A stretch of 64,000 nt of DNA, taken from the IMG/VR virus record IMGVR_UViG_3300018080_008436, positions 186,001-250,000 of that record, one strand, 5' to 3'. The notes under the pieces are model-generated. The model made no database searches, had not been told where the DNA came from, and was given only the letters and a program-made list of their open reading frames with translations. The position numbers and the translations under genes are program-made. Each line of letters begins with the position of its first letter. Position 1 is the first letter of the stretch. Positions 6,787 through 53,092 of the stretch are shown here, piece after piece.

Positions 6787-6972
6787 TTCAGTACCTCTTG
6801 TTTGTAGTTTTTAGAAATTCAGTAAAGTACTATTATACATATTTTTCAACGTATTTTCCTACTATAATTCAAAAAAAAAATAAGAAAGCAAGTCGAAAGA
6901 CTAAAAAAGGGAGATCTTTTTTATCATATCTCCCTCTCAGAGTCATAAGTTGTTGAAAATTAATGACTTTTG

Positions 6973-7352
6973 TGGAGATGGCGAGAGTCGAACTCGCGTC
7001 CAGTATATCGATCCAAAAAGGTCTCTACATGCATAGTTGAGTGATTGTTTTTCAGGCTCATCCCAACAAGCCCTTAATCGTCTTACCGATTGTAGCAGTC
7101 TTTCCTATTGTCAGCGATCTTTCTCGTCGTAGCGTCCTATTCCACCAACGTGATCTTTTCTTCTGTCTGCTCAGTTAAAAACAGGCAACCCTGAGTAAGA
7201 CATCCGCTTGATTAAGCGGCTACTGCCGAAGCAGTAGGGAATTCAATTACTTTTTTAGCAATTATATTTTTGACCGATGATTAACGAGGCCAACGATCAT
7301 CCTCGACATGCAACCTAGATTTCATGACACCTGTCGATACCATTTCATCCCC
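6973..7352 (-). ncRNA. ssrA: tmRNA
   Basis: 5' GGGGATGAAATGGTATCGAC; 3' GCGAG-TTCGACT-CTCGC-CATCTCC-A; G3.U70 acceptor pair; tag frame 7259-7212 after ATAATT encodes AKKVIEFPTASAVAA-stop; CCA not encoded. Confidence 0.96.
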
Positions 7353-9677: not shown

Positions 9678-9768
9678 TGGTAGGTGACCCGAATGGTAAG
9701 GGCCTCGGCTGTTAACCGAGTATGGGCAGGGATGTCCTTTGCGAGTTCAAGTCTCGCCCTACCAGCCA
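9678..9768 (+). tRNA. tRNA-Asn(GTT) with long variable arm (type II)
   Basis: CTCGG-CTGTTAA-CCGAG, then V-arm GGGCA-GGGA-TGTCC; G73; CCA. Confidence 0.88.
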
Positions 9769-9771
9769 AAC

Positions 9772-9896
9772 TGTGGCGTAGCTTAATGGTTAAAGCTCTA
9801 AAAGAAAGGAGTCTGATAATAAGACTCGTTACTGCAATAATTATTCTAAATTCGTCTATTAAACGAGAGATCTTGGTTCGAATCCAAGCGCCACAG
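9772..9896 (+). tRNA. tRNA-Asn(ATT) with a 53-nt insert (9800-9852) in the anticodon stem
   Basis: TGTGGCG/CGCCACA acceptor. Removing 9800-9852 gives a perfect CTCGT-CTATTAA-ACGAG arm and a 72-nt cloverleaf. No encoded CCA. Confidence 0.7.
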
Positions 9897-9904
9897 CTAA
9901 TGAT

Positions 9905-9981
9905 TGCCTCGTAGCATAATTGGTATTGCACCAGATTTTGATTCTGGGAATTTCTGGGTTCGAGTCCCAGCGAGGCATCCA
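9905..9981 (+). tRNA. tRNA-Gln(TTG)
   Basis: TGCCTCG/CGAGGCA; CCAGA-TTTTGAT-TCTGG; CCA. Confidence 0.92.
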
Positions 9982-10032
9982 TTTTTTACCACAAATCGTT
10001 CTATTGGTAACATTAATTTGTATAATAAAACT

Positions 10033-10776
10033 ATGTTCCCAAAAGTGGAGTCGGTTGTGAAAGAAAGGGAAAAAAGAAGTTTACTTTGGCACAAATATAA
10101 TGATGAAGAATTTAGAGAACTAGTAAAAAAGTCTCAAACATATTCTGACATACTTAGAGATCATGGCATGTCAAACAAAGGGGGGAATTGCAACACGCTA
10201 AAAAAGAGAATTGCTAAACTTGGGGTTAATGACGATCATATTGCAAAGGGGCATTCTTCTAATAAAGGTAAAAAGTTCATCTCTAAAAAGATTCCACTTA
10301 ATAAGATACTTGTAGAAAATTCTACCTACAATAGGGGGCATCTAAAAAATAGAATTATAGAAGAGAAACTAATAGATTACAAATGTCAAAAATGCGGAAT
10401 AACAAATAAATGGGAAGGCAGTGAACTTGTTTTAGTACTTGATCACATAAATGGTGTCAGTAATGATCATCGACTAAAAAACCTTCGTTTTCTATGCCCC
10501 AACTGCAACAGCCAGACAAAAACTTTTGCTGGAAGAAGTAAACGCAAAAGATATTACTGTGAACAATGCGGAAAAGAAAAATCGTATAAGCATTCTAAAA
10601 AATGCAAAAGTTGTGCCGCAAAAGATCTAGAAAAACGTAAAGTCCAAAACCGCCCTTCCAAAGAAGAACTTGCCGAAATGATTGATACAATGTCTTGGCT
10701 GGCAATCGGAAAAAAATATGGAGTTTCTGATAATGCAATCAGAAAATGGGCAAGATCTTACGGTATAATATCCTAA
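10033..10776 (+). CDS. HNH homing endonuclease with C-terminal HTH
   Basis: CQKC...LDHINGVSNDHRLKNLRFLCPNCNSQT. Start is ATG 10033 or GTG 10057 (GGAG upstream), not 9904, which lies at the tRNA. Confidence 0.9.
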   Translation: MFPKVESVVKEREKRSLLWHKYNDEEFRELVKKSQTYSDILRDHGMSNKGGNCNTLKKRIAKLGVNDDHIAKGHSSNKGKKFISKKIPLNKILVENSTYNRGHLKNRIIEEKLIDYKCQKCGITNKWEGSELVLVLDHINGVSNDHRLKNLRFLCPNCNSQTKTFAGRSKRKRYYCEQCGKEKSYKHSKKCKSCAAKDLEKRKVQNRPSKEELAEMIDTMSWLAIGKKYGVSDNAIRKWARSYGIIS

Positions 10777-11844: not shown

Positions 11845-12200
11845 AACCATTTGAAGAAGTCTTTAAGATGTATCACGACATGGCAGGAGAGTGGAGAATG
11901 AATCTCGACAATCTGGCTTCTCTTCATCCTGACAGTCATATTGTTTTCGGAGCCGAAGAACCTGAATATGTATCAAAAGACTCTGTTATTGAAATGGATG
12001 TTTATCTCGCTGGAGAGAAAATCGGAGTCACAAGAGCCTGCGGAGAATTAGACAATGATGTCATTCGCAGAAATATGATTGGAATGAAAAGAGTCGGAGT
12101 AAAAAATGAGAGTGGTCATCACAATGCTTACTCCACAGGATTTGAGTTAACAGTTGATAAGGATAATAAAAGGATAGATTTAACTCCAAAAAAGTTTTAG
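11841..12200 (+). CDS. hypothetical protein
   Basis: 119-aa ORF whose stop overlaps the first base of tRNA-Cys. Confidence 0.65.
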   Translation: MKPFEEVFKMYHDMAGEWRMNLDNLASLHPDSHIVFGAEEPEYVSKDSVIEMDVYLAGEKIGVTRACGELDNDVIRRNMIGMKRVGVKNESGHHNAYSTGFELTVDKDNKRIDLTPKKF

Positions 12201-12319
12201 GTCGCGTAGTGTAATGGCAAGCATCTTATAAAATGAACCTGACATAAGGTTCTCTTCAGCAATAGTTAAAATCGTCTGCAAAACGAAGGGTCTGGGTTCG
12301 AATCCCAGCGCGACCTCCA
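12200..12319 (+). tRNA. tRNA-Cys(GCA) with a 45-nt insert (12228-12272) in the anticodon stem
   Basis: GGTCGCG/CGCGACC, U73, CCA. Removing 12228-12272 gives a perfect TTCGT-CTGCAAA-ACGAA arm. Confidence 0.8.
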
Positions 12320-12411: not shown

Positions 12412-13680
12412 ATGATAATTTTGAAAGGCAAATACAACGAAGCGAAGATTTTCACAGATAACGTTGAATCTTCTGCTCAGGGCCAGATCATTACCTTCTT
12501 AAATGACAAAACATTTGAGAACGGAAATATCAGGATCATGCCAGATGTTCATGCAGGTGCAGGAGCCGTTATCGGGTTTACCGCTCCAGTTGGAGATAGG
12601 ATCATTCCAAACGTCATTGGAGTTGATATTGGCTGTGGAGTCTGCGCGTTCAAACTTGGACACAGAAAAGACATTGGTGAGAAGTTTGACAAACTCGACA
12701 AATTCATTGAAAAAACCATTCCTCATGGAATGAACGTTAATGGGGACTACAGAGATCTAGCCAAAAGCGGATATTGTGGAACCAAGGATGAGTTTGACGC
12801 ATTTACCGCAGAAGTAAAAGAAGTCTGCAATAGAACTGAACAGAACTTTACCAGAGTTATGTGCTCTTTGGGTTCTTTAGGTGGTGGAAACCATTTCATT
12901 GAAATTGACAAAGATGACGAAGGTAACCTCTGGTTAGTTGTTCATTCTGGTTCCAGGAATTTCGGTTTACAGATCGCCAAGTATCACCAGAACAAAGCAA
13001 AAGAATACTTGGACTTCATGAAATCGTCTGAGAACGCTAAGTTAGTGGCAGAAGTCAAAAAGACTGCGAACAAAAAAGAGATATCTGGGAAGATCAAAAA
13101 AGCCAAAGATGAGGCTAAAGAGAAGTATGGTGTACATACTGGTCTTGAGTATCTTGAAGGTGGAGGTGCTGACCAATATAAAAAGGATATGGACGTAGCT
13201 CAAAGGTTCGCAAGTTTTAACCGATTGGTTATGGTTGGTCGAATCGTTGAAGGTTTTTATGGACTGAAGTATTCAGAGATGGAAGTTTATCACTCAATCC
13301 ATAACTATATCAACTTCGAAGATGGAATCGTTCGAAAAGGAGCAATCTCTGCTCATTGTGGTGAGAAAGTTGTCATTCCTTTAAATATGGCTGATGGAAC
13401 AATCATTGGCATCGGAAAAGGAAATGAGGACTGGAATAACAGTGCGCCTCATGGAGCAGGACGTAAAATGTCCCGTTCAAAAGCCAAGAAGTCTTTGGAT
13501 GTGGATTATTTCAGGAAAAGAATGAAACAAGCTGGAGTCTGGTCTAGTTGTGTTGGAAAAAGTACATTGGATGAAGCACCAATGGCTTACAAAAAGGCCC
13601 AAGAGATTATTGACTATTTGGAGCCAACTGTTGAGATCCAATGTCACATGAAACCAGTTTATAACTTCAAGGCGCATTAA
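12412..13680 (+). CDS. rtcB: RtcB-family RNA 2',3'-cyclic/3'-phosphate ligase
   Basis: MPDVHAG, GVDIGCG, GSLGGGNHFIE, VHSGSRNFG, HNY, RKGA, SAPHGAGR, DEAPMAYK. Confidence 0.97.
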   Translation: MIILKGKYNEAKIFTDNVESSAQGQIITFLNDKTFENGNIRIMPDVHAGAGAVIGFTAPVGDRIIPNVIGVDIGCGVCAFKLGHRKDIGEKFDKLDKFIEKTIPHGMNVNGDYRDLAKSGYCGTKDEFDAFTAEVKEVCNRTEQNFTRVMCSLGSLGGGNHFIEIDKDDEGNLWLVVHSGSRNFGLQIAKYHQNKAKEYLDFMKSSENAKLVAEVKKTANKKEISGKIKKAKDEAKEKYGVHTGLEYLEGGGADQYKKDMDVAQRFASFNRLVMVGRIVEGFYGLKYSEMEVYHSIHNYINFEDGIVRKGAISAHCGEKVVIPLNMADGTIIGIGKGNEDWNNSAPHGAGRKMSRSKAKKSLDVDYFRKRMKQAGVWSSCVGKSTLDEAPMAYKKAQEIIDYLEPTVEIQCHMKPVYNFKAH

Positions 13681-13682
13681 GC

Positions 13683-13988
13683 ATGACTAAAGAAGAGATT
13701 AGAGAATGGATGAGATCCGCAGAATGTGTCGCAACTCATAGATATGAAGATTATGGTAACATATACCAATCCAGAATCTATGAGAAAGATGGGAAGCTCT
13801 ACTTAATAGAACTTTGCAATGGTGGAGTCTCAGAGAAATTTGGAAAGAAAGGATACATACGTGGAGAGTATGAACTTGTCGAAGTTCAGAAAAGAGAATA
13901 TACCGTTCAGATGGATGTTACTGAATACTCTGTTGATGGGCAAGGCGTTGTTTATGAAAAAGACGAGTGGATAGAGGTGGAACAATGA
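13683..13988 (+). CDS. hypothetical protein
   Basis: 101-aa ORF in the rtcB run. Confidence 0.65.
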   Translation: MTKEEIREWMRSAECVATHRYEDYGNIYQSRIYEKDGKLYLIELCNGGVSEKFGKKGYIRGEYELVEVQKREYTVQMDVTEYSVDGQGVVYEKDEWIEVEQ

Positions 13989-15031
13989 GAGTTCTAGTTA
14001 CTGGAATGATTGCAGGTCTTGGTGAAGAACAGTATATCAAGAAAGTCATCAACCTCGGAAAGGATGATGGAGTTTGCATCCAATACTACAACCTTCTTAA
14101 ATGCCTTCAATCGACTTCTGGGACCAATCGACTCATGGGGGCAACCAACTACCTGTTTGAGGTTCTAAGAGAGCGAGAATACGCTAAAATCGGTTGTGCG
14201 CTTGCAGATGATGACTGCGAGAACGCAATTATAAGAGTTCCTGCAACAATTGCCTGGAATCATGTCAACCACAAGCTCAAAGACCACAAAATCATCAAAG
14301 AGATTATTAAACCTGATGTGGTCGTTACTTTGATTGATGCGGAGTGGACAATTCGGAAAAGATTGGGGCAGGGGCATTTCAACGATCCATTTCGCAAACA
14401 AATCAATGAAGAGAACCCATCTATTCAACATGTGTTACGTTGGATGAATGAAGAGGTTAGTTTGTCTGAAGATTGGGCAAAATATTTTGGTGTTCCTCAT
14501 TATGTCATTCCCATGGCTCAACATCCTTGGTCTTTGTATAAATTAATCAAACATCCAAATATCCCATCCTTTTACGTTTCGTACTCGATGACTCATGCAG
14601 ATGATGAAGCTCGTAAAAAAATTAATGAGGTTGTTTTAAAACTTTGTGATTATGGACTGGTAATTGATCCTCAAGCAATTGAAATTGGTCATCAGAAGAT
14701 GAGTTCTTTGGACAAAGAATTCACTTACTCCTTTACTGTTCATAGAGACTTACACTGGTTTGTTGGTAAAGTTGATTCTGTTGTTGCGATCCATCCATAT
14801 GATACAAAACCTCCTTTGTCCACTGGTATGATGGATGAGTTAGGTCATGCCAGGGATTATATGAAGAATAGATATATGATTTTCCCACCTGAGCATTTGA
14901 GTCCATTCACTACCAACAGTTATGTTGACAAAGGATGTGTATTTAAAGATGCTAAGTCATTCTTCATCGCTCTTGAAGAAGAAGGGTATGAACAACTGGA
15001 AGATTTGTCAAATTTGGAGTTAGAAAAATGA
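13985..15031 (+). CDS. putative kinase-like protein fused to a nucleoside-deoxyribosyltransferase-like domain
   Basis: MRVLVTG start; PDVVVTLID; C-terminal FYVSYSMT...RDLHWFV..VD.VVA...LSTG...E..HA. The P-loop is degenerate. Confidence 0.45.
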   Translation: MRVLVTGMIAGLGEEQYIKKVINLGKDDGVCIQYYNLLKCLQSTSGTNRLMGATNYLFEVLREREYAKIGCALADDDCENAIIRVPATIAWNHVNHKLKDHKIIKEIIKPDVVVTLIDAEWTIRKRLGQGHFNDPFRKQINEENPSIQHVLRWMNEEVSLSEDWAKYFGVPHYVIPMAQHPWSLYKLIKHPNIPSFYVSYSMTHADDEARKKINEVVLKLCDYGLVIDPQAIEIGHQKMSSLDKEFTYSFTVHRDLHWFVGKVDSVVAIHPYDTKPPLSTGMMDELGHARDYMKNRYMIFPPEHLSPFTTNSYVDKGCVFKDAKSFFIALEEEGYEQLEDLSNLELEK

Positions 15032-15342
15032 TCATTGATGCAAACACTGAATTCGAAGTTCATCTTCTGGAAGACGATGAAAGGACTGGGATGAAAAAAG
15101 GTGACATCCTTTATCCCAAAGGAGTGTATTGGAACAAAGGTAACCTCATTGTCGTTGGTAGCACTGTTGTTGACAATACCACCAGATTGTCTTTCCCAAA
15201 AGAAAATGTAGAAGTCAGAATATCAAATGGTTTACACCATGTCTGGACTGTTGGAAAACATTTGAAGTTATATGCTGATCGGGATGAAAAATTGTGTTCT
15301 TGTAATGGAAGTATTCATATATTAAATTTTGGATGTCATTAA
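15028..15342 (+). CDS. hypothetical protein
   Basis: 104-aa ORF with ATGA coupling. Confidence 0.6.
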   Translation: MIIDANTEFEVHLLEDDERTGMKKGDILYPKGVYWNKGNLIVVGSTVVDNTTRLSFPKENVEVRISNGLHHVWTVGKHLKLYADRDEKLCSCNGSIHILNFGCH

Positions 15343-15353
15343 AGGAGTGAATC

Positions 15354-16334
15354 ATGAAGAGAATTATTTTTTTTTGTTTGGCGGTAATTTGTGTAACAGT
15401 ATTTGCGAAAGATGAGAACAAATACAGATCGATCTCTTTGTATGAAGAGAATGACATTGTTGCAGGCACTGACCTTGACTATACAAATGGTTTCAGGTTA
15501 CAGTACATCAGTAGTGATATTGAGACCTGGGACTTGCCAGACTGGGCCATCAAAATTGGCAAGAATCTTCCGTTATTCAATCATGAAGGTTACAAAAACA
15601 ATATTGGGATCGGATTTGGTCAGGATATGTACACTCCTACCGATATTGAAGATTTCAATTTAAGAGAAGATGACAGGCCATACGCAGGATGGCTGTATTT
15701 AGCCTTTAGTCTACATCATAAAGACGAAAATGATTTACATAAGTTGGAGTTGACGTTGGGAGTTGTTGGTCCTTACTCATTAGCTTGTGATACCCAAAAA
15801 ACAATTCATGAGTGGATTGATTCAAGAAACCCAAATGGTTGGGATCATCAGTTGGGTAATGAGTTCGGCTTGAACCTATCTTATGAATTCCGCAAGAAGT
15901 ATCTTTTCTTAGATAATTGGGTTGATGTTATCCCTAGTGCTAAGGTTAGTATTGGTAACGTTTCAACATATTTAGCAACTGGAACTACTGTTCGTTGTGG
16001 ATATAACTTGCCGAATGATTTTCATAGCAACAGGATTAGTTCTTCTGGGTTTGCTTTGCCAACCAATTACAGCAACAAAGGGGATTGGAGTGTTTATATT
16101 TTTGGCAATGTAACTGGATATGCAGTTGCTAGAGACATCTTCTTGGATGGAAATACCTTTGAGGACAGTCATAGCGTCGATAAGAAGCATTTTAAGGCCG
16201 AATTCGAGCTAGGAGTCGGGATGAGCTACAAACGCTTTTTTATGACCTATACAAGGGTTTATAAGACGAAAGAGTATGATACTCAGGAAAAGAATCATAC
16301 TTATGGATCTGTAAACCTTGGATTCAGGTTCTAA
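15354..16334 (+). CDS. lpxR: LpxR-family (lipid A deacylase-like) outer-membrane beta-barrel
   Basis: Signal peptide; ENDIVAGTDLDYTNG, GQDMYTP, DRPYAGWLY, GWDHQL, RDIFLDGNTF; C-terminal Phe. Confidence 0.85.
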   Translation: MKRIIFFCLAVICVTVFAKDENKYRSISLYEENDIVAGTDLDYTNGFRLQYISSDIETWDLPDWAIKIGKNLPLFNHEGYKNNIGIGFGQDMYTPTDIEDFNLREDDRPYAGWLYLAFSLHHKDENDLHKLELTLGVVGPYSLACDTQKTIHEWIDSRNPNGWDHQLGNEFGLNLSYEFRKKYLFLDNWVDVIPSAKVSIGNVSTYLATGTTVRCGYNLPNDFHSNRISSSGFALPTNYSNKGDWSVYIFGNVTGYAVARDIFLDGNTFEDSHSVDKKHFKAEFELGVGMSYKRFFMTYTRVYKTKEYDTQEKNHTYGSVNLGFRF

Positions 16335-36349: not shown

Positions 36350-36437
36350 TGGTGGAGCCGACAGGATTCGAACCTGCGCGGAGCTTGCGCTCTCTTGATT
36401 AAAAGTCAAGTACCTTCAGCCACTCGGTTACGACTCC
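36350..36437 (-). tRNA. tRNA-Lys(TTT) with long variable arm (type II)
   Basis: CTTGA-CTTTTAA-TCAAG; V-arm GAGC-GCAA-GCTC; type II-like D arm; A73; CCA. Confidence 0.9.
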
Positions 36438-52287: not shown

Positions 52288-52292
52288 CAAAC

Positions 52293-52373
52293 AAGCTGAT
52301 TTATTTTTTGAAGGGTTTGAACCTTCTAGATGGTGTAAGCATCGTTAACCTGTTTTTTGCTGTAATCAGCCTT
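52293..52373 (-). ncRNA. small RNA with end-pairing stem, ACAGCAA motif and a T-arm
   Basis: AGGCTGATT/AATCAGCTT stem; internal GAAGG-TTCAAAC-CCTTC. Confidence 0.55.
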
Positions 52374-52490: not shown

Positions 52491-52569
52491 TGGTGGAGAC
52501 GGTCGGAATCGAACCGACCACATGCTGGTTGCAAACCAGTATCGCCAAAGCCTTGGTACATGCGCCCCC
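52491..52569 (-). tRNA. tRNA-Ala(TGC), atypical D arm
   Basis: CTGG-TTTGCAA-CCAG; G3.U70; CCA. Confidence 0.82.
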
Positions 52570-52999: not shown

Positions 53000-53092
53000 T
53001 GGTGGAGAAGATTGGAGTCGAACCAATTAAAATTGTTTGCCGAAGAGAGCCTTATAACAAGCTCAGTTTGCCCTCCGCAGGGCATCTTCTCC
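53000..53092 (-). ncRNA. tRNA-like RNA lacking a canonical anticodon arm
   Basis: GGAGAAG/CTTCTCC acceptor, GCCCT-GCGG-AGGGC arm, ATTGG-TTCGACT-CCAAT T arm, ACCA; the centre is the hairpin+TCTTCGGCAA element. Confidence 0.65.

Follow-up and report, generated by a model that had tools for sequence, protein, structure and literature searches.

A tRNA-shaped RNA of an uncultured phage carries a conserved RNA module in the place of its anticodon arm

What is an RNA that keeps the acceptor and T arms of a tRNA but has another element where its anticodon arm should be? The question is raised by a locus in a 64,000-nucleotide stretch of DNA (hereafter the window), bases 186001-250000 of a 476,248-bp virus record (IMGVR_UViG_3300018080_008436) with 39% G+C, in which ARAGORN finds 59 tRNAs and a tmRNA. 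The record represents an uncultured huge phage from sediment metagenomes; three DNA runs from sediment and sea water hold the region and no RNA run does, and no cultured phage resembles it. The original prediction was that the locus is a tRNA mimic with an intact acceptor stem and ACCA end, D-like arm and T arm, that its centre is the element also inserted in a tRNA-Cys gene 40 kb away, and that the RNA could be a chargeable but non-decoding decoy or scaffold. We find that what was observed in the sequence is correct in every part. The proposed interpretation is only partly supported: the structural reading holds and a scaffold is the reading we favour, but charging and a decoy role remain conjecture, with no recognisable aminoacylation identity set. 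The prediction also did not recognise that the element is a widespread module with a circularly permuted, stand-alone form, or that an RtcB ligase gene lies next to the copy in tRNA-Cys. The features referred to below are collected in Table 1.

The 93-nt RNA, which we term X239k, reads 5' to 3' as the acceptor strand, AU, the D-like hairpin, AAACU, a 6-bp hairpin with a 6-nt loop, the tail UCUUCGGCAA, the 9-nt A/U linker ACAAUUUUA, a canonical T arm, CUUCUCC, the discriminator A73 and CCA. It folds at -33 kcal/mol with z = -3.9 against shuffled sequences, and 0 of 200 shuffles fold as well. ARAGORN does not call it and the Rfam tRNA model (RF00005) gives no hit; the only hit is to tRNA-Sec (RF01852), at 23.5 bits (E = 0.018 in a 351-nt search) against a cut-off of 47. 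The 7-bp acceptor stem, the discriminator and CCA and the T arm, with its GTTCRANYC loop, are those of a canonical tRNA, but the 5-bp anticodon arm with a 7-nt loop and U33, the D loop of 7-11 nt and a score of at least 29 bits are lacking. X239k lies in a same-strand cluster that follows a terminator and comprises Val, X239k, Ala, an uncalled Ala-like RNA, Ala, an open module unit (see below), Val and Ile. The uncalled Ala-like RNA shows the same compact D-hairpin design as X239k. Among the DNA contigs examined, no variants, indels or joints were found at X239k. The tRNA-Cys (RF00005, 40.2 bits) carries GAACCU-GACAUA-AGGUUC-UCUUCAGCAA between its D arm and anticodon stem, and the element that it shares with X239k is far beyond chance.

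The element is a defined RNA module. All copies share an A-rich 5' linker, a 6-bp helix P1 (GANNYU paired with AGNNUC), a loop that begins with G and ends with A, the tail NYUNCAGCAA, with a fixed distance of 8 nt between AAG and CAGCAA, and an A/U-rich 3' linker. A pattern search and a covariance model, R1, built from our first alignment (A1), find seven strong copies, as a hairpin, and two weaker copies without the upstream arm in the 476-kb genome, all in tRNA clusters or in one intergenic RNA operon. An exact-pattern scan of 185,579 prokaryote genomes returned a single chance hit in a coding region, and no copy was found in cultured phages. In contrast, a metagenome scan returned the four copies of this phage's own contig plus 14 tRNA-embedded copies on 13 other contigs, and IMG/VR added two more; in all, 23 copies from 16 sources were aligned (A2). 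All tRNA-embedded copies are in the sense of the tRNA. P1 is paired in every copy, with compensatory changes at two pairs in A1; over 20 P1 variants, pairs 3, 4 and 6 show 4, 5 and 4 pair types, while pairs 1 and 5 never change. The P1 loop varies from 5 to 7 nt, and in three relatives it holds an extra stable hairpin with a UUCG or UUCC loop. Moreover, the hairpin sits beside a separate, normal anticodon arm in 11 or more other tRNAs. The loop is therefore a connector and not an anticodon loop, and the hairpin is not an anticodon arm.

We found the module in four settings. In class A, the module with its linkers (about 45-50 nt) lies between nt 26/27 and 29/30, next to or inside the 5' strand of the anticodon stem, in otherwise complete tRNAs with normal 7-nt anticodon loops; in this phage these are Cys-GCA, one with AUU and one with GAG, and elsewhere the anticodons are UUC, UUU, UGA, UAC, UAG, GCU and AUG. 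Two of these module-bearing tRNAs have A34 anticodons (AUU and AUG), which are unusual in bacterial systems outside Arg-ACG. In class B, the module and its linkers replace the anticodon loop, so that there is no anticodon; this phage has two such RNAs and four more are on other contigs. In an alignment of six class B carriers from four contigs, RNAalifold keeps the acceptor, the T arm and P1, and 10 of 22 predicted pairs have double changes, so that these non-decoding carriers are under selection as RNAs; two of them, S315k of this phage and L143_2 (L numbers denote loci or contigs in our analysis), are orthologues that differ by a compensated acceptor pair. The GGUUCGAnUCC core of the T arm is invariant across the carriers. 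In class C, the whole anticodon arm is replaced, and X239k is the only example. X239k itself was found only in the same or a near-identical phage, including an identical copy in a second IMG/VR contig, and any selection on this particular locus is therefore beyond measurement.

In the fourth setting the strand order of P1 is swapped. AAG plus the 5' strand and the motif come first, and the complementary strand, followed by CUGUU, comes 35-220 nt later, so that P1 is formed by the RNA ends; there are four such open-P1 units in this phage and at least eight in L069, and their closing stems differ by compensation between units and between phages. These units enclose anticodon-stem-loop-like hairpins with CU-NNN-AA loops, or such a hairpin plus a T-arm-like hairpin, or whole tRNA bodies in permuted order. 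Of the latter, the L106 unit is a permuted class B RNA whose acceptor is 7/7 paired and closed by a loop, in the order T arm, acceptor, D arm, and a unit in L069 holds a Phe-like body with its acceptor 6/7 paired. A free CCA end is thus not universal in the family. Three open units of this phage form an operon between a near-consensus sigma-70 promoter and a terminator, a layout also seen in L069. The hairpin in X239k is the closed, circularly permuted version of the same helix-plus-motif, and its loop GUUAUA reads like the 3' trailer (CUG-UU) fused to the 5' leader (AU-AAG) of an open unit.

Table 1. Coordinates of the features discussed (window positions unless marked as genome or L).
Feature	Position	Strand	Description and support
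X239k	53000..53092	-	Whole tRNA-shaped RNA, 93 nt, class C carrier
Acceptor stem, 5' strand	53086..53092	-	GGAGAAG; seven Watson-Crick pairs with 53004-53010 (CUUCUCC); ACCA at 53000-53003; same acceptor in the module-bearing tRNA of L165
D-like hairpin	53070..53083	-	GCCCU-GCGG-AGGGC, 5 bp, 4-nt loop
Module helix P1 with loop	53047..53064	-	GAGCUU-GUUAUA-AGGCUC
Module tail	53037..53046	-	UCUUCGGCAA (family consensus NYUNCAGCAA); constant spacing after P1 in all copies
T arm	53011..53027	-	AUUGG-UUCGACU-CCAAU
Cys198k, tRNA-Cys(GCA)	12200..12316	+	Module at 12235-12262 plus A/U-rich linkers, inserted after nt 27; removing about 45 nt restores a perfect cloverleaf
N195k, tRNA with anticodon loop CUAUUAA (AUU)	9772..9896	+	RF00005, 45.5 bits; module at 9809-9837 (P1 GAGUCU/AGACUC), 5' of the anticodon stem
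Open-P1 unit	52292..52372	-	Just after tRNA-Ala(ggc); in order AAGGCUGAU, UUACAGCAA, anticodon-like hairpin (loop CUUACAC), T-arm-like hairpin, AUCAGCUU-GUU
RtcB RNA ligase gene	12412..13680	+	PF01139, 224-226 bits; 96 nt downstream of Cys198k, same strand
RtcB and following genes	12412-16334	+	RtcB; 101-aa ORF; 354-aa protein with an N-terminal P-loop kinase (adenylate-kinase-like) fold; 104-aa ORF; LpxR-family outer-membrane lipid A deacylase (342 bits), unexpected in a phage
Uncalled tRNA-Ala-like RNA	52491-52569	-	Acceptor GGGGGCG/CGUCUCC with G3:U70, A73 and CCA; anticodon loop UUUGCAA (UGC); D arm replaced by CCAA-GGCU-UUGG hairpin; only hit the two ends of the Rfam tmRNA model (28.3 bits)
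HNH endonuclease ORF	9904-10776	+	Inside the Gln/Asn tRNA cluster; listed TTG start overlaps tRNA-Gln, true start probably later
tmRNA	6972-7352	-	143.5 bits; tag peptide AKKVIEFPTASAVAA
tRNAs with long variable arms	9678-9768	+	This and the next two rows: 87-91 nt; Asn, Lys, Gly, Met, Glu, Ile or Cys anticodons, each beside a normal-length isoacceptor
As above	36350-36437	-	
As above	genome 78813-78899, 79926-80014, 282409-282499, 303188-303278, 318294-318381		
Short class-I-like tRNAs	genome 317319-317395, 317848-317923		Leu anticodons
Class B carriers of this phage	genome 315933-316051, 282011-282138		Module and linkers in place of the anticodon loop
I281k (locus L046 855-930)	genome 281853-281930	-	Module between a tRNA 3' fragment (T arm plus acceptor 3' strand) and a downstream tRNA 5' part whose acceptor strand is 6/7 complementary to it
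Small-RNA operon (locus L062)	genome 308350-308890	-	Promoter TTGAAA-16-TATAAT, three open-P1 units (about 150, 54 and 58 nt), rho-independent terminator
tRNA with CUA anticodon	genome 409748-409822		Outside the window; amber-suppressor type, labelled Pyl by ARAGORN
Repeated intergenic hairpin	genome 4.2-6.2 kb, 10.6 kb, 16.3 kb, 30.5 kb		Outside the window; form AAAAAGAGTACT..CTG ... CAGCAGTACTCTTTTT; may be a family of terminators or another repeat element
Module-bearing tRNA (AUG)	L165 11558-11680		A34 anticodon
Permuted class B RNA	L106 38-147		Order T arm, acceptor, D arm
Permuted tRNA-Phe-like unit	L069 8847-8970		Acceptor 6/7 paired
tRNA fragments and half modules	L069 8727-8970		
Operon of open units	L069 9400-9990		Same layout as L062
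Modules with a hairpin in the P1 loop	L141 3867-3946; L138 2409-2563; L143 470-610		5' arm duplicated in L141

Several known RNAs resemble parts of this family. The open units that enclose permuted tRNA bodies have the topology of the bacterial YrlA Y RNAs, that is, an end stem, T arm, acceptor stem-loop, D arm and end stem (Chen et al., 2014; PMC4201824), and X239k likewise combines a tRNA-like domain with a separate helix away from the anticodon position. An RtcB gene lies next to one family member, as yrlA lies next to rtcB in Salmonella. However, the Ro-binding motif GNCGAAN0-1G is absent and is replaced by AAG-P1 plus YUNCAGCAA, no Ro60/TROVE gene (PF05731) was found in the phage genome, no Rfam Y RNA hit reaches threshold, and X239k has the unpermuted order, with a free ACCA and a closed distal helix. 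Three open units gave full-length hits to RF01414, the Dictyostelium Class I RNA, but at 20.6, 22.5 and 22.9 bits, below the cut-off of 41.5; the alignments match the 6-bp end stem, the terminal CUG and UUACAGCAA, which corresponds to the Rfam consensus CUUACAGCAAU. The published description of Class I RNAs, of 42-65 nt with a covarying 6-bp stem joining the ends, AAG at the start, CUGU at the end and an 11-nt motif beside the 5' strand (Kjellin et al., 2021; PMC7919456), fits open units of 54-62 nt, in which an A/U-rich variable part follows the motif, whereas X239k shows these features only in permuted form. The hosts are bacterial viruses from sediment and sea water and not amoebae, and there is no DUSE promoter. 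We report this as a resemblance of architecture and not as homology, which is unproven; convergence is possible.

The relation between closed and open forms also mirrors that between the protein-spliced tRNA introns and the circularly permuted tRNA genes of archaea and the red alga Cyanidioschyzon, in which a short insert sits at non-canonical positions, its removal restores the cloverleaf and an RtcB-type ligase is present. Here, however, there is no bulge-helix-bulge motif and no EndA, the host is bacterial (tmRNA present, CCA encoded), and X239k has no anticodon arm to restore. A tRNA-like acceptor/T domain without an anticodon arm, joined to another functional domain, is also found in tmRNA, of which natural circular permutations exist. 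X239k, however, has A3-U70 and not G3:U70, no pseudoknots and no tag reading frame, as the frame from GCA runs into the T arm without a stop; frames from GCA are inconsistent among copies, only noise at 12 bits was seen with permuted-tmRNA models, and the phage has a normal tmRNA of its own. The engineered tRNA scaffold for recombinant RNA, reported by Ponchon and Dardel, likewise replaces the anticodon arm by a cargo while the acceptor, D and T parts give processing and stability, but that design is artificial, and here the cargo is a conserved module also found on its own.

Other identities were not supported. A mimic of CRISPR repeats (Racr-like) is excluded because the genome has no array and the pattern is essentially absent from the prokaryote genomes scanned. 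A boxB-boxA/nut-like antiterminator shows only a loose likeness to boxA, and its CUCUU part is not conserved among copies. Known self-cleaving ribozymes and riboswitches gave no Rfam hit at E up to 5-10, and the hammerhead core CUGANGA is absent. A group I intron, with a ribozyme core of 200 nt or more (P1-P9), is not compatible with an insert of about 45 nt, and no Rfam intron was hit. The search for a partner protein was also negative: Pfam searches of the genome found no Ro60, RRM, EndA (PF01974), EndoU or T7-type RNA polymerase (PF00940), and the genes near X239k and RtcB included no nuclease by Pfam or PHROGs. A structural similarity of the 101-aa ORF after RtcB to EndoU (TM 0.45) is too weak to use.

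Our preferred, though tentative, explanation is that X239k is a non-decoding small RNA that keeps the acceptor/T-arm half of a tRNA, plus a compact D hairpin, as a scaffold to display an autonomous module: P1 with its invariant A-U and U-A pairs, the single-stranded motif YUNCAGCAA and the A-rich linkers. The analysis establishes that the module is a conserved, covarying RNA structure, that it is attached in the sense orientation to tRNA bodies in many uncultured phages, that non-decoding tRNA-like carriers are conserved with compensatory changes, and that the same fold exists circularly permuted, with the topology of YrlA and the architecture of Class I RNAs. The function, in contrast, is inferred from DNA sequence alone. 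Possibly, the tRNA part gives RNase P/Z processing, a CCA end and stability, and may engage tRNA-binding enzymes, while the module would be the binding site of an unidentified trans-acting factor, perhaps part of an RtcB-linked RNA repair or processing set; X239k would then act as an adaptor or tether (Y-RNA-like) and not in decoding. This view is favoured by the class B carriers, which can never decode, by the tolerance of the fold to where the ends lie, by the stand-alone units and by the absence of any mismatch in the helices of X239k. X239k shares its acceptor, D-stem start and P1 loop with its nearest relative, the L165 tRNA, but differs by the loss of about 30 nt, a rebuilt D hairpin and a fully compensated T stem, and we infer that it probably arose from a module-bearing tRNA of the L165 type by loss of the anticodon arm.

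The main rival, which we consider less likely, is that the module with its linkers is an intron-like processing signal, cut by an unknown endoribonuclease that leaves 2',3'-cyclic phosphate and 5'-OH ends, with the exons resealed by the phage RtcB. The open units and permuted bodies would be handled by the same machinery, in parallel with BHB introns and the permuted tRNA genes reported by Soma et al. (2007), and X239k would be a degenerate derivative, or the source of a roughly 48-nt acceptor/D/T mini-RNA. In the class A tRNAs pairing across the insert is kept, including split anticodon stems, and the anticodon loops are normal 7-nt loops, at a site where, judging from tRNA-ribosome contacts, an unspliced insert of 45 nt should hinder ribosome use; this favours removal and counts against a displayed handle. 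Moreover, local excision gives ARAGORN-callable tRNAs for Cys198k, N195k, E282k (another module-bearing tRNA of this phage) and 8 or more tRNAs of other phages, although ARAGORN is too tolerant to fix exact boundaries, and rtcB next to Cys198k is followed by a P-loop kinase-like protein. The permuted tRNA-Phe-like unit in L069 also fits this reading. Excision does not, however, restore a cloverleaf in X239k or in the class B RNAs, which are nonetheless conserved. No EndA or EndoU homologue was found in the genome, the A-rich linkers do not pair consistently and vary in length (5' 5-10 nt, 3' 7-14 nt), as does the insertion site, so that no obvious ruler exists, and a pattern spanning a hypothetical exon-exon junction found no intron-less allele of the Glu-type tRNA in IMG/VR. 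RtcB was not found on the other records, but these are fragments and the absence is uninformative. The two readings are not exclusive, since the factor that binds the module could be a processing or repair enzyme.

Less probable still is a selfish or recombinogenic mini-element that spreads or recombines among phage tRNA genes, with X239k a functionless tRNA left by insertion plus deletion of the anticodon arm. The many contexts and the tRNA fragments and half modules in L069 and at I281k (where, as parsed by hand only, the module would sit at the acceptor ends of a body open at the anticodon) suggest rearrangement at the module; a direct repeat CCAAAAAA flanks the S315k copy, and an HNH endonuclease ORF lies in the tRNA cluster. 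Against this stand the uniform sense orientation of the tRNA-embedded copies, the covariation of P1, which points to selection on the RNA, the helices kept through compensatory change in the carriers, the perfect helices and re-engineered D hairpin of X239k, and the near absence of the module from prokaryote genomes and its absence from cultured phages. A DNA-level promoter, in which TGnTATAAG acts as an extended -10 box and transcription starts near CAGCAA to drive the downstream tRNAs, is very unlikely. X239k reads TGTTATAAG, the AAG-CAGCAA spacing is constant and copies often follow tRNA 3' ends; but in the open units the AAG-side strand covaries with a strand 35-220 nt downstream and must be transcribed, so that the start lies upstream of the motif, two units lie just downstream of near-consensus sigma-70 promoters, a promoter scan finds nothing at X239k and the genome has no T7-type polymerase. 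Least likely is a decoding tRNA of the tRNA-Sec/allo-tRNA type, with a 9/3 or 8/4 acceptor/T fold, a 5-bp D stem with a 4-nt loop and a deviant anticodon arm, for example UUA reading UAA. The minimum-free-energy fold does extend the acceptor to 9 bp, tRNA-Sec is the best Rfam hit and the genome has a suppressor-like CUA tRNA. However, the score is far below the cut-off, the hairpin loop has 6 nt without U33, and the same hairpin sits next to genuine anticodon arms and tolerates inserted hairpins. The features that define tRNA-Sec and allo-tRNAs, an 8/5 or 9/4 fold, a 6-bp D stem with a 4-nt loop, a UCA anticodon loop and a long variable arm, are not fulfilled, and there is no anticodon loop.

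The most far-reaching possibility, which seems unlikely but is not excluded, is that bacteriophages possess a protein-dependent tRNA splicing and permutation pathway for which P1 plus YUNCAGCAA is the recognition signal. Cutting by an unknown endonuclease and resealing by the phage RtcB would give short non-group-I tRNA introns, permuted tRNA genes and small circular or tRNA-shaped by-products such as X239k in a bacterial virus. Alternatively, or in addition, the module would be the prokaryotic-virus counterpart of the Dictyostelid Class I RNA core and bind a conserved partner.

tRNA-like non-coding RNAs such as tmRNA and Y RNAs are few, and each has opened a field. Here, a compact, covarying module is grafted onto tRNA bodies in at least four ways and also exists as a stand-alone, circularly permuted small RNA in several uncultured large phages from sediments and sea water. 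The family also shows that standard tRNA finders miss a set of phage tRNA genes. The unexpected match to the defining features of Dictyostelium Class I RNAs, whose function is unknown and which are thought to be unique to social amoebae, although below the Rfam threshold, gives a second system in which to ask what that motif does. If the module is a handle, it defines a new class of phage adaptor RNAs that borrow tRNA processing; if it is an intron-like signal, it would be the first enzyme-spliced short tRNA intron system in the bacterial world.
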